A stretch of 12,852 nucleotides of DNA, from contig JAWQFM010000021.1 in NCBI GenBank assembly GCA_033442325.1, positions 1 through 12,852 of the forward strand, read 5' to 3'. Positions within the stretch are counted from its first letter, which is position 1; each line of letters opens with the position of its first letter. The DNA is from Salpingoeca rosetta (taxonomy: Eukaryota; Protista; Choanoflagellata). Below, piece by piece: positions 217 through 12,852 of this stretch. Position numbers and translations under genes: made by a program. Under the pieces are notes generated by a model. The model did no database searches. It had not been told where the DNA came from and worked only from the letters and a program-made list of their open reading frames with translations.

Positions 217-4194
<3,978 letters not shown>

Positions 4195-4238
4195 GTGCGT
4201 CAGCTTGCAGGGCTTCTTGCTTTGTTGGCAATTGCCTG

Positions 4239-6773: not shown

Positions 6774-6873
6774 NNNNNNNNNNNNNNNNNNNNNNNNNNN
6801 NNNNNNNNNNNNNNNNNNNNNNNNNNNNNNNNNNNNNNNNNNNNNNNNNNNNNNNNNNNNNNNNNNNNNNNNN
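6774..6873. other. Assembly gap (100 N)
   Basis: Run of exactly 100 N, usually a placeholder of unknown size. Confidence 1.
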
Positions 6874-8140: not shown

Positions 8141-10030
8141 CCATCGTTGGTGCCGGCCATCCTAGACGCATTCTCAGACCTCAAGTACGAACACGACGTT
8201 GATGATGTTGGTGGTGGTGTTGTCGATGATGCTGTGTATCTGCGGTGTGATCCTCAGTCACCATGTTCTTGGATTGCGACGCAGCCATTCCACCACCATC
8301 CCTCACCCATCTACCCTCCCCCCCCCCCAACACACACACCACGACCACCCTCATCCACACCCTTGCTGTGCAGTGTGGCGCCGGCACGCCTGCGCCAGAT
8401 CTGCGATCACGTGTTGGGCCAGCTTGGATCGCACAGTCCAGAGTGCCTCCCAATCGTCATCAAGTTTCGCATGCAGCAAGGTGGTGGCGGTACTGTTGAG
8501 GGCGGCGAGGAGTGGGAGATGATGCCACAGTGTGTGACTGTGTGACGGCGATCTCACATGCGCTTGTCTGCAAGTGTCGCTGTGGCTTGTTCTCTCGCAG
8601 CCGCTCCCTCACATGCCTTGCACACACTCACACACATGCACGTTGATGTTCCGCGGATGGAATGGATGCGATTGCGCTGACAGCGAACATGATCGACTCC
8701 TCCACCATGCAACACCAGCAACGGGGCGATGATCACGATGTGTTTGTCTGTGGTGGCTGCCATCAAGAACGGGCTCGCATTTGATGCGCGCATTACAAAG
8801 GCGTGGCTGCGGCCAACTCAAGACGACCACGGCCCAGCCAATCACCGCCCTCGACCTGCTTGTGCTGCTGCTGCTTCACCAAGCACCAGAACGCCCACTG
8901 CCGCGGCGCAGAGACCACCGTGATCAAGCTTGCAAGCACGGGCCGGCTCACCGCCGCCATGGCCGCTGCCACGTTTGCCAGACACACGCGCGCGTTCTTG
9001 ATGTGCTTCAAGTCGATTGTGCACATGATCGACATCCTGAACCGGCAGCAGGAGGCCGCGTGCCGCCACCTCGCCTCCACGGCCGGAGGTGGTTGGGGCG
9101 CTGGTGGCGCACATTGGCACGGGGCAGGCACAGGAGGTGGACGCAGCCATGCCCGTGCTGCTATGTCGCTGGCCACAGGCCACCTGAAGTTGCTGCACCC
9201 GATTGCGCTCATGCTGAACGGCATCCTGGACTGCCTGAGCAACCTGCACTTCATCCACATCCGGCAGCTCTTCCGTGTCCCGACCACGCTCACGTCTGAC
9301 CGCTAGCGCACTGCCGCCGCAGGCCTCAGCATTGATGACGAGAACGAGGATGGTGGGTGAGATTGTGTTTGAGTGTGTGTGTGTGTGTGTGCGGATGAAC
9401 GTGTGTGCATGAACTTGTGCGTTGGGGAAGGCGTGTTGGACAACATCATGTCCTTCCATGAAGAGTGTCTCTCACCCTTCTCATTCAACCACCACCACCA
9501 CCACCAACACCACCACAATCCCTTCTGCATTGCACTGGGTGTACGGCAGCTGTCTCAATCGAACGAAGAGCTGAAACGCACCGGCACCATCGCCGCCGCC
9601 ACCGTCACCCGCACCTTGTTCGCTCTTGCCAACGACGCAGACATCTCCATCGACCGTGCGTTCGTGCATGCGTGTGTGCGTGTGTTCATGTGTGTGCGTG
9701 TTTGCGTGCGTTTGCGCCCTTGTTTGCAGTTCACCTGAGTCCCCCGTGTGGACTTGTCGTGCTCCTCATCATCCACGACTCACCTGTCTCCGCGCCTGTC
9801 CAACAGGCGACCATCTCTCCTCACTGTTGCAGGCATTGCACTTCATCTATGTCGACAAGTGTGTTCAGCTGACATGCTCCGTTGCCACAACGCCTCCACG
9901 TCCACGCCCAGTCATTTGCCCTTCTATCGTGGCGTCGTTTCCTCCCCTCCCCCCACCGCCAGCACCAACAACCATCAAGAGCAAGCACATCTGTCGGGAT
10001 GCGTGCACGGGGATGGCGGACTCACCATCG
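8141..10030 (+). pseudogene. FANCD2: Fanconi anemia group D2 (FANCD2)-like unprocessed pseudogene fragment (middle of the protein)
   Basis: Colinear blocks matching recalled FANCD2 sequence. PSLVPAILDAFSDLN/VAPARLRQICDHVLGQLGSHSPECLPIVIKF (exons 8141-8184, 8374-8480) vs 'VPILDVLSSL..LEDLPVIIKF'. VVAAIKNGLAFDARITKAWL..HR/LDLLVLLLLH vs 'VIKSAIRYEKTISEAWI..HKVFDLVMLFIIY'. EVVGALVAHIGTGQAQEVDAAM vs '[22 protein letters not shown]'. LNGILDCLSNLHFIHIRQLFRV vs '[22 protein letters not shown]'. VRQLSQSNEELKRTGTIAA vs '[20 protein letters not shown]'. Within exons the blocks fall in different frames, with stops at 8678, 8690 and 9304. Confidence 0.85.
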
Positions 10031-11009
10031 ACCCACCGCCGCCACGGCCGCTTGGCTTCAGGTCGCTCGCCGACCCCGACGTACCCGTGTGTTGGCCGCC
10101 GAGACCCCCAAGCGCACGTTACAGCCCGACAACACCGTCAACACGATTGTGGTTTGAGCAGACGGACGGGTGCGCCCCAAGCGCGGGAGACGTGCTCTAG
10201 CTTCTCGTCGGAAGGACACGCACGTGGTCGTCAGCGAGAAGACGCTGCAGGCACCGTTCGAGACGAAGCTGCAGCTGCTGTCGGGGATTGCCGCCGAGTT
10301 TGCGGGTACTGTGCACAGCAAGACCGACGTGGAGACAAGACTGCGGAAGCACGCTGCCGAAACGCGAACCTCTTCGTGTTCCTGATGTCGCTGCAGCCCT
10401 TTGTGTGGTGGAACCTGTCGCACGCTGGGGACGCGCAACCTGAACCCGGAGGAGGAGACGATAGAGGAGGTGCAGCACGAGAGTTGGGCGCATCCCCGAC
10501 TAGCGTGGGCCTGCAGCGACGACGTGCTGTTCCGCACGGTCGCGGACGGACAACGAGTCCAGGCTAGCGACCCAGCCCTCCGACGAGGCTGCTGGGCGTC
10601 GTGCACGTTGAGTAACTGACCTGTTGCCGATGCCCCACACATTCACGTGCTGATGGAACTACTTTTCCGCCAACCGCGCCCTGGAGCTGATACGCAAGGC
10701 GGGCGTTGTGGGCGTGGACGTGGACGTGGGAGTGAAAGAGGACCTGTTTGCTTGCCAGTGTATGGTTGACGTGTGGTGTGGTAGTATGCTCGTTGCTTGT
10801 CAGCCGGTTGAATTGCGTGAAGAGTTTACCAAAGTGTGAAACAAGCAACGTCAAGCAAGTAAAAGCAAGGGGAAAGCAAGCACGTGAAGGAAAGACAGGA
10901 GCAAAGGAGCAAAGTGACCAACCAGCAAACCAGCAAGCACAGACACACACACACATACACACACACACACGCACGCACGCAAACACATACACACACACAC
11001 ATACCTGTG

Positions 11010-12798
11010 CTACAAGACACTGCAGCAGCCACCTGAGTCACTGGGCAGAATTGCACCTTGAACCTTCACATCAGCACCGCGAATGCGCCGCAGTTCGCGC
11101 TCCGCGTCGCGCGTGTCTGGGTGGTCTGGGCCGACCGTGCTTGTGTAACCGTCGAGGGCCCGCTGCATGTAGGCGCAGGCCTGCTCCTTGTCACCGCGCG
11201 TGTCGTGCAGCAGGCCGATGTTCTCAAGCGTCATGGCTACGCTCGAGTGCTTCTCCCCCAGCGTCTCCACCTTGACGGCGAGCGCCTGCTCATAAACCTC
11301 AACCGCCTTGTCGTACTCGCCCTTGTCGGCGTAGGCGGCGCCGAGGTTGTTGTACGTCTGTGCCGTGCTCGGGTGCTTTTCACCCAACGCCTCCACCTTG
11401 ATGGCGAGCGCCTGCTCATAAACCTCAACCGCCTTGTCGTACTCGCCCTTGTCGGCGTAGGCGGCGCCGAGGTTGTTGTACGTCTGTGCCGTGCTCGGGT
11501 GCTTCTCACCCAACGCTTCCGCCGTGATGGCGAGCGCCTTCTCGTACAGCGCAATCGCTCTGTCGTACTCGCCCTTGCTGTAGTAGGCGCTGCCGAGGTT
11601 GTTGTACGTGCTCGCTGTGCTCGGGTGTTTCTCGCCCAGCGTCTCCACCGTGATGGCGAGGTCCTTCTCGTAAAACGCAATCGCTCTGTCGTAGTCGCCC
11701 TTGTTCTTGAAGGCGATGCCGAGGTTGTTGTACGTCTGTGCCGTGCTCGGGTGCTTCTCACCCAACGCTTCCACCGTGATGGCGAGGTCCTTCTCGTAAA
11801 ACGCAATCGCTCTGTCGTAGTCGCCCTTGTTCTTGAAGGCGATGCCGAGGTTGTTGTACGTTATGGCTGTGCTCGGGTGCTTCGCGCCCAACGTCTCCAC
11901 CTTGATGGCGAGGGCCTTCTCATGGTACGCAATCGCCTTGTCGTAGTCGCCTTTGCTGTGGTAGGCGATACCGAGGTTGTTGTACGTCTGTGCCGTGCTC
12001 GGATGCTTCTCACCCAGCGTCTCCACCCTGATGGCGAGGGCCTTCTCATAAAACGCAATCGCCTTGTCGTACTCGCCCTTGCTGTAGTAGGCGAGGCCGA
12101 GGTTGCCGTACGTGTTCGCTGTGCTCGGGTGCTTCTCGCCCAGCGTCTCCACCTTGATGGCAAGGGCCTTCTCATAGAACACAATCGCCTTGTCGTACTC
12201 GCCCTTGTCGCTGTAGGCGATACCGAGGTTGTTGTACAACGCCGCCACGTTCCTCCCCTTCTCCCCTTCAGTGCGGAGGTAAACCGCCAGCGCTGTCTCG
12301 TAGTAGGCAATGGCGCGGTCGTGCTCGCCAAACTGCTTCAGCACCAACCCAACGTGGCCGCACAACTGCGCGAAGGCGTCAGTGCTGTCCTCGCCTCGTG
12401 CCCGCATGGCTTCCACGGCACCCACCGCCTTTTGCAGGCACCACGCGCGCAGCTGGTCCTTCACGGCCTGGTTGACTGCGCTGAAGCCGCCCGCCCACGA
12501 CTGGATCGCCGTGAAGATCATGTGCTTGTCGTGTGGGTTGAAGGCGTCGGCTCGCTCTGCCTGCACGCGCACCAGCGTGTCTGTGACGGCTTTAAAGTCA
12601 CCCGCGATGGCGTTTTCGAGTGCCTGTTCTTCGCTGTTGGGTAGTTGGATGGTGACCTCTGTGCCTTCGTTGCTGATGCCACAGAAGATCTCCCACAAAC
12701 ACCACGCGCGTGTCAAGGGAACAGGGTCTCGCCACGGCATGAGCACCAGCAGCACATGGCCAATGTTGGCAATCGACTGCTTGAACGTGGTGCTCCAC
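11010..12798 (-). CDS. TPR-repeat protein (kinesin-light-chain/TPR_12-like 42-aa repeats) with N-terminal TIR/HET-like domain and C-terminal CaaX; last coding exon only, 5' exons lie beyond the window
   Basis: Acceptor ctttctcgacacccag| at 12799, then an open frame WSTTFKQSIANIGHVLLVLMPWRDPVPLTRAWCLWEIF... through 10 TPRs to SGGCCSVL-TAG (11012-11010). Confidence 0.92.
11241..12248 (-). repeat. Coding tandem array of eight highly similar 126-bp units (42-aa TPR)
   Basis: Consensus TAxTYNNLGxAYxxKGEYDKAIAFYEKALAIxVETLGEKHPS; 8 x 126 = 1008 bp exactly; one divergent capping TPR on each side. Confidence 0.95.
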
Positions 12799-12852
12799 CT
12801 GGGTGTCGAGAAAGGGAAAGGGGAGGAATTGGGGTGGAGGGAAGACGAAGAC

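Follow-up and report, generated by a model that had tools for sequence, protein, structure and literature searches.

A last exon near a contig end of Salpingoeca rosetta encodes part of an extended TIR-like domain, a TPR array and a candidate lipid-anchor tail

TIR-type enzymes serve immunity as a common currency in bacteria, plants and animals; the HET domains of fungi are relatives of theirs that are poorly understood. HET is the cell-death effector of HET-E/D/R and of many non-NLR incompatibility proteins. HET domains are reported to be remotely related to TIR, and homologues in stramenopiles, haptophytes, choanoflagellates and green algae were described in 2014 (Dyrka 2014, PMC4986451); the presence of HET homologues in choanoflagellates was thus already known. 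The TeTIR domains of TEP1, NWD1/2 and NPHP3 are extended TIR-like folds of 200–350 residues with a catalytic Glu, and are described as invariably located directly upstream of a NACHT domain (bioRxiv 10.64898/2026.09.21.753143). A 2026 atlas of eukaryotic TIRs contains several uncharacterised divergent clades (PMC13142454). Here, we analyzed the first 12,852 bases of contig C21 (JAWQFM010000021.1) of the 55.4-Mb genome of the choanoflagellate Salpingoeca rosetta, and this whole stretch is referred to as the window. Proteins encoded in the window match S. rosetta PTSG_ proteins with up to 97% identity. On the minus strand, translation gave a last exon of 595 open codons, from 12798 to the stop codon at 11012–11010, in which the C-terminal half of a TIR-like domain is followed by a tetratricopeptide repeat (TPR) array and a short cysteine-containing tail. 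We put at about even the chance that this is the 3′ exon of a family member built from a TIR-like N-terminal domain (N-domain), a TPR array and a membrane module, and acting as a Glu-dependent receptor-enzyme.

The exon start is preceded by a pyrimidine tract and a cag acceptor, and its translation begins with WSTTFKQSIANIGHVLLVLMPWRDPVPLTRAWCLWEI. The domain half in the exon comprises a helix (WWSTTFKQSIANI), strand C, helix C bearing the Glu, strand D and a helical extension. The first-pass annotation of this DNA, made from the letters alone, had proposed that the strand HVLLVLMPW is followed by the motif R-A-W-C-L-W-E at 12710–12690; translation confirmed this reading and placed the Glu codon at 12692–12690. 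The full-length annotated paralogs P0001, P0002, P0004 and P0009 are 94–97% identical over the shared part and carry approximately 127 further N-terminal residues. This extension holds ATVFVSHAW and PVFFWFDLFMNNQ, including FFWFDLFMNNQ; both upstream motifs had been anticipated by the first-pass annotation. Between R-A-W-C-L-W-E and the first TPR helix (exon residue 142) lie approximately 105 residues. No Walker A motif (pattern [AG]xxxxGK[ST]) was found anywhere in the exon, and no NACHT or NB-ARC domain was matched by Pfam in the exon protein, in agreement with the earlier proposal that no NOD module separates the effector domain from the TPRs.

The N-domain is strongly conserved. Residues 1–270 of P0001 were searched against 1.84 billion representative proteins, and 4915 homologue clusters (defined at 50% identity) were obtained at E ≤ 0.001, including 553 at E ≤ 1e-30. 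An alignment of 32 diverse domain members, designated as A2, delimited a single domain of approximately 250 residues with 12 invariant columns, including F72, S74, W77, D109, R157, W159, C160, E163 and D217. The A2 profile matched the window at C21:12405–12797 (E = 1.7e-53). Among 303 homologous domains, the R, W, C and E of R-x-W-C-x-x-E are present in 299, 302, 300 and 301, respectively, and Glu is replaced by Asp in the other two, indicating that the motif is no chance match and that the Glu is conserved among relatives as predicted. The dN/dS of the domain part of the exon among ten close copies was 0.12, indicating purifying selection on the N-domain. A small hypervariable patch was observed in this otherwise strongly conserved domain, at exon residues 64–69 (approximately 12608–12591) in the helix after strand D; its variants across paralogs are AGDFK, RDDYK, FDDYE, RSSYK and RGSYT.

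Profile searches did not assign the N-domain to a described family. No Pfam family matched P0001:1–270 at E ≤ 10, and none of the 120 best short homologues has a precomputed Pfam domain over the N-domain region. TIR_2 (PF13676) was the only Pfam family matched by more than one A2 member (4 of the 32, best E = 0.0058, sub-threshold); its gathering threshold of 28 bits was reached neither by P0001:1–270 nor by the 32 members. The Pfam HET model did not match P0001 (E ≤ 10) or the 32 members (E ≤ 1), and a six-frame HET search of the genome returned nothing, with the controls equally silent, so that this negative carries no information. PADLOC gave a single weak ThsB match in one member. Searches of PDB chains with the N-domain, as a single sequence and as a profile, returned noise only. 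An ESM Atlas search of named clusters gave no usable match, and the structural neighbours were the family itself.

We modelled the N-domain of P0001, the 97%-identical paralog, by AlphaFold2 (AF2) with A2 as the alignment (pLDDT 92.6, pTM 0.90). The model is an extended TIR-like, flavodoxin-like fold in which a parallel sheet alternates with helices from strand A to helix E, and the residues between the motif and the TPRs belong to this single compact domain. The top structural matches were plant TIRs, SARM1 and ThsB, and the plant TIR domains RPP1, RPPT and SNC1 ranked highest in Foldseek (E from 6.7e-3, probability up to 0.96). The conserved Glu is located at the start of helix C after strand C, which is the position of the Glu in TIR-type NADases. 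Default local hhalign against six TIR_2 domains of S. rosetta gave a probability of 0.6% over 32 columns; only greedy hhalign spans strand A to the Glu, and there the Glu of the window's family aligns with the invariant TIR_2 Glu (E = 0.0018, probability 15%). A homodimer prediction for the N-domain scored 0.00, which is not evidence either way. Thus, of the proposed TIR_2/HET-type identity, the fold and the position of the Glu were borne out by the model and structural matches, while the Pfam TIR_2 and HET thresholds were not reached.

The TPR array is of the kinesin light chain (KLC) type. TPR_12 (PF13424, E = 1.2e-160) and TPR_10 (PF13374, E = 4.2e-121) each matched ten stretches, and PF24885 (TPR_NPHP3) was also matched. 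Tandem Repeats Finder (TRF) detected a 126-bp period of 7.9 copies with 87% identity at 11241–12237. The TPRs of the window copy are 62–95% identical to each other, with two adjacent near-identical pairs (93% and 95%), and the repeat number in paralogs, counted by an anchor motif, ranges from 1 to 9. Over 185 repeats, entropy was maximal at positions 9, 12, 16, 19, 20 and 38, the first five of which are spaced as one face of helix A. The repeats are thus internally conserved and variable at few positions, as expected of the diversified TPR sensor that had been proposed. The dN/dS of the first 31 codons of the TPR region among ten close copies was 0.54.

In many paralogs, the linker between the TPR array and the C-terminal module contains a Q-x-LL[LMV]RF[IL] motif once or twice (for example P0001:505–550, and P0028, P0033, P0035 and P0036); the motif is not in the window copy. 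An LFP motif is a cis ligand in kinesin light chain. Q-x-LL[LMV]RF[IL] could similarly be a cis ligand of the TPR groove, or could partly be intron read-through in the gene models.

The window protein ends in ...SDSGGCCSVL, with Cys at −4 and an aliphatic residue at −2 of the extreme C-terminus, as in a CaaX box; Leu at the last position suggests geranylgeranylation, and the adjacent Cys is available for palmitoylation. CCSVL is therefore a candidate palmitoylation and geranylgeranylation site. The closest paralogs, on C4 and C20, continue past ...RIRG with an acidic linker and a PH domain (PF00169, E = 1.5e-7). This segment of approximately 480 bp is missing from the window copy relative to the C4 and C20 copies, and tblastn with the PH regions of paralogs found no PH-domain exon downstream in the window. 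The tail is, however, not an accident of this deletion, as more distant paralogs share the ...DSGGCCSVL end. P0017, P0020, P0022 and P0024 end in ...SGGCCSVL, and P0019, P0028 and P0035 end in CCSIL, CCTLI and CCGMQ, respectively. The DNA of the window tail is unique in the genome at ≤ 3 mismatches per 36 nt. Of 38 annotated paralogs, a PH domain is present in 18, a CC-a-a-X box in 7 and a Cys-rich hydrophobic tail such as DWAVLVLCCPCLVAALPFLCIYSCVKSVCQK in 3 (P0006, P0014 and P0025); this last type resembles a tail anchor or a segment with several palmitoylations. The existence of three such exchangeable membrane-targeting ends is an argument for a function of the family at membranes, and for the predicted lipid anchor being a real, selected feature.

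We surveyed the family with the A2 profile. The S. rosetta genome contains at least 66 loci with the second domain exon, none with internal stops, so that the expanded family suggested by the first-pass annotation is present. Approximately 58 first exons were also identified, and their intron lies at one and the same profile position (121/122). The clade of the window consists of the 19 closest copies, with 88–94% DNA identity. Sixteen of the 19 are found no more than 77 kb from a contig end, and each of these 16 is transcribed outward, toward that end. Since at most 24.5% of the genome (an upper bound) lies within 100 kb of a contig end, the binomial p is approximately 8e-8, for copies that are not independent. 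The other 46 family copies are dispersed in the genome. The clade copies are located 12–77 kb from the ends of C20, C29, C33, C7, C1, C25, C2, C11, C24, C4, C36, C17 and C30, in repeated subtelomeric blocks. The paper on the S. rosetta genome mentions shared repeat blocks in subtelomeric regions, without naming the genes within them (PMC4054682). Separately from this family, at least 52 loci genome-wide match Pfam TIR_2, 29 of them over threshold, and several are near contig ends (C29:26466, C30:19274, C26:20811 and C36:42521).

Beyond S. rosetta, the family occurs in choanoflagellates, oomycetes, diatoms, haptophytes, green algae and a chytrid. Named homologues are from Aphanomyces euteiches (an oomycete, with an ankyrin fusion), Chaetoceros tenuissimus (a diatom) and Phlyctochytrium planicorne (a chytrid), and a further homologue is a EukProt entry labelled UC1. 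Oomycete, haptophyte and chlorophyte clusters make up the Atlas neighbours, in which the domain is joined to TPR, DUF285, methyltransferase or HNOB modules; other fusion partners are cNMP-binding, zf-MYND and PH domains. None of 185,579 prokaryotic genomes contained the signature peptide, and a scan of IMG/VR for the signature peptides likewise yielded no relative. No mention of six PTSG locus tags was found in the literature.

The splice acceptor at 12798/12799 was seen in stranded RNA reads, joined to an upstream exon ending in ...NVTANLPQE(W). All reads over 12789, 12666 and 11078 have the paralog-type bases, and the junction is therefore documented for the family, not for the window copy. 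At the specific tail of the window copy, the RNA depth was approximately 0 in three RNA runs; the only mismatch-free match to 11011–11233 was a contig of run X1, whose label as RNA is a guess. The reads at 11052–11110, all of which have T at 11078, derive from an expressed paralog that has the same ADVKVQGA stretch and retains the acidic linker. They follow the window sequence as far as 11052 and then run on as ...RTGGALGEEE; thus, 11052 is the point where the window copy departs from that expressed paralog.

In the receptor-enzyme that we propose, the protein would sit on the membrane via its C-terminal module, and the TPR array would bind a ligand or keep the N-domain inactive, much like the ARM domain of SARM1. 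On engagement, the TIR-like domains would become active as Glu-dependent N-glycosidases, with NAD+ as the most likely substrate. As the family has no NOD, the TPRs, the membrane or a multivalent ligand would have to bring about clustering. The most speculative part is a role in defence or in the recognition of non-self; such an immune or self/non-self role may fit the expansion together with the subtelomeric position, the variable sensor and the shuffling of the domain.

Other explanations have to be weighed against this proposal. The TIRs of MyD88 and TLRs are protein-interaction modules, and the TIR-like domain here may likewise be a non-catalytic interaction module of a scaffold or adaptor, with TPRs that recruit cargo at membranes in trafficking, ciliary or signalling processes and a copy number that is a by-product of subtelomeric duplication. 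Such a scaffold would fit the kinesin-light-chain/NPHP3-type TPRs (TPR_12 and TPR_NPHP3), the many animal adaptor TIRs among the structural matches, the low RNA depth and the shared subtelomeric repeat blocks known in S. rosetta (PMC4054682). However, Glu, Arg, Trp-Cys, Ser-His and Asp are almost absolutely conserved over thousands of divergent clusters, as is more usual for an active site than for an interaction surface. In addition, the Glu aligns with the catalytic position of TIRs, and the domain has been shuffled onto many different sensor-type repeats; we regard a scaffold as rather unlikely. An N-glycosidase of the same superfold with another substrate would retain the catalysis and would be a nucleoside 2-deoxyribosyltransferase, a DNPH1/MilB-like nucleotide hydrolase, or a nucleic-acid or NAD-cap-directed enzyme. 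Nucleoside 2-deoxyribosyltransferases (1f8x, 7o62, 6evs, 8rh3 and 1s2d) and MilB (4ohr) score equal to TIRs structurally, and the catalytic Glu position is common to these families (bioRxiv 10.64898/2026.09.21.753143). The top Foldseek ranks were nevertheless TIRs only, TIR_2 and ThsB were the sole recurrent sequence hints, and the F-x-S ... W-x-D ... W-C-x-x-E pattern is that of the TIR_2 domains in the same genome, which makes another substrate improbable in our estimation.

It would also be possible that the window copy is a decaying or silent subtelomeric duplicate, perhaps without intact 5′ exons, in which case the finding describes the family and not a working gene. The loss of approximately 480 bp of linker and PH sequence relative to the C4 and C20 copies points in this direction, as do the exclusively paralog-type bases at the diagnostic positions and the near-zero RNA depth of the tail. 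On the other hand, the 595-codon exon is open, the dN/dS of 0.12–0.2 against nine paralogs indicates purifying selection, the tail is the conserved ...DSGGCCSVL of another subfamily and not random read-through, and the X1 contig matches 11011–11233 without mismatch. Weighing these points, we consider decay of this copy a minor possibility.

If the receptor-enzyme reading is extended further, the family may be an ancient eukaryote-only class of NOD-less, membrane-tethered TIR/HET-like receptors outside current domain libraries. Its subtelomeric clade would diversify TPR sensors in the manner of NLR or antigen-variation repertoires, and the sensing of bacteria, viruses or non-self cells would set off Glu-dependent cleavage of NAD+ or nucleotides, and with it signalling or cell death. 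We hold this extension to be tentative and doubtful; if it is true, the closest living relatives of animals would possess an immune repertoire of TIR enzymes. The family of the window has a receptor-like architecture without the usual NOD switch and is tied to membranes by what appear to be three interchangeable modules. It could reveal whether the unicellular ancestors of animals had TIR/HET-type enzymatic defence or allorecognition, and could also reveal the nature of HET-like chemistry. S. rosetta is amenable to genetics and its interactions with bacteria are defined, so that functional tests are feasible.

The coordinates of the exon and its parts are summarized in Table 1. The 3′ flank has 79–93% identity to the sequence past the stop codon in PH-type paralogs.

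Table 1 Features of the last exon and its flanks (positions in the window).
Feature	Coordinates	Strand	Basis
Intron 3′ end (pyrimidine tract; cag acceptor 12801–12799), before the last exon	12799..12852	−	Sequence; RNA junction; intron position as in ~58 paralogs
Extended TIR-like domain, C-terminal half (~residues 128–268)	12375..12798	−	Profile; AF2 of paralog P0001; fold matches; dN/dS
HVLLVLMPW, strand C equivalent	12732..12758	−	Translation; DSSP strand at model residues 141–145; aligned to strand C of S. rosetta TIR_2 domains
R-A-W-C-L-W-E motif; Glu codon 12692–12690, candidate catalytic residue	12690..12710	−	Conservation; TIR_2 alignment
KLC-type 42-residue TPR array, 10 Pfam stretches, among them a divergent capping repeat	11076..12374	−	TPR_12; TPR_10; TRF
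C-terminal tail ADVKVQGAILPSDSGGCCSVL; Cys-Cys-Ser-Val-Leu box 11027–11013	11013..11075	−	Translation; similar paralog ends
Stop codon	11010..11012	−	Translation
3′ flank: (TG)n microsatellite 10938–11001 and conserved stretch common to paralogs, probably 3′-untranslated	10700..11009	−	TRF; paralog identity

Elsewhere in the window, stranded RNA reads revealed a convergent plus-strand transcript at 10000–10670, ending near the 3′ end of the TPR gene; the ORF at 9626–10567 (plus strand) within this transcript has no Pfam match. Exon-like plus-strand ORFs at approximately 2100–4200 resemble an ABC-transporter transmembrane region (ABC_membrane, E = 9e-4, 3028–3213) and are probably a neighbouring multi-exon gene. 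A run of 100 N (6774–6873), either an assembly gap or a masked stretch, is located between (CA)n repeats. CA/TG microsatellites of at least six units account for approximately 720 bases in total, and the contig begins with (GT)n at the window start; TTAGGG repeats were not found in the window.

We compared the family with the described systems. With TIRs of the STIR clan (TIR_2, SARM1, plant TNL TIRs and ThsB), it shares the flavodoxin-like strand-helix core, F-x-S in strand A, W-x-D in strand B, the hydrophobic strand C followed by x-W-C-x-x-E with an invariant Glu, and the fusion to repeat-type sensor domains. It differs in being approximately 100 residues longer, with a 65-residue N-terminal extension and a helical C-terminal extension, and in the extra invariant residues His75, Gln115, Trp127/128, Arg157 and Asp217. 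Unlike TIR_2, it falls under the Pfam threshold and no prokaryotic member with the signature motif was found. The blocks x-S-x-x-W, W-x-D-x-x-x-x-N-Q and R-x-W-x-x-x-E are visible in A2 in this order, which may be that of fungal HET (PF06985), judged by its consensus and published description. Both are associated with highly conserved TPR or ANK repeats, and the taxa with HET homologues (PMC4986451) are those of the window's family, although this family has no attached NACHT.

TeTIR, compared by description only, is likewise an extended fold of the TIR-like kind, bearing a Glu that standard TIR models miss, and NPHP3 also has KLC-type TPRs; the family of the window is without NACHT and thus lies outside the TeTIR definition. 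As it scored below the TIR_2 and HET models and has no NACHT, the family would work like these kinds of protein without being a member by those definitions. SARM1 (ARM-SAM-TIR) is similarly a NOD-less TIR with a helical repeat regulator, whereas here the domains come in reverse order, a SAM oligomerisation module is absent, and TPRs replace the ARM repeats. Compared with NLR-type proteins, the family has no central STAND ATPase, which places it outside the NLR/STAND class, and it has a predicted membrane anchor. It nevertheless shares the effector-plus-TPR logic of fungal HET-NACHT-TPR and plant TIR-NB-ARC-TPR proteins, together with the 42-residue TPRs, high internal identity, variation in repeat number and few hypervariable positions of NLR-type repeats (Dyrka 2014, PMC4986451).
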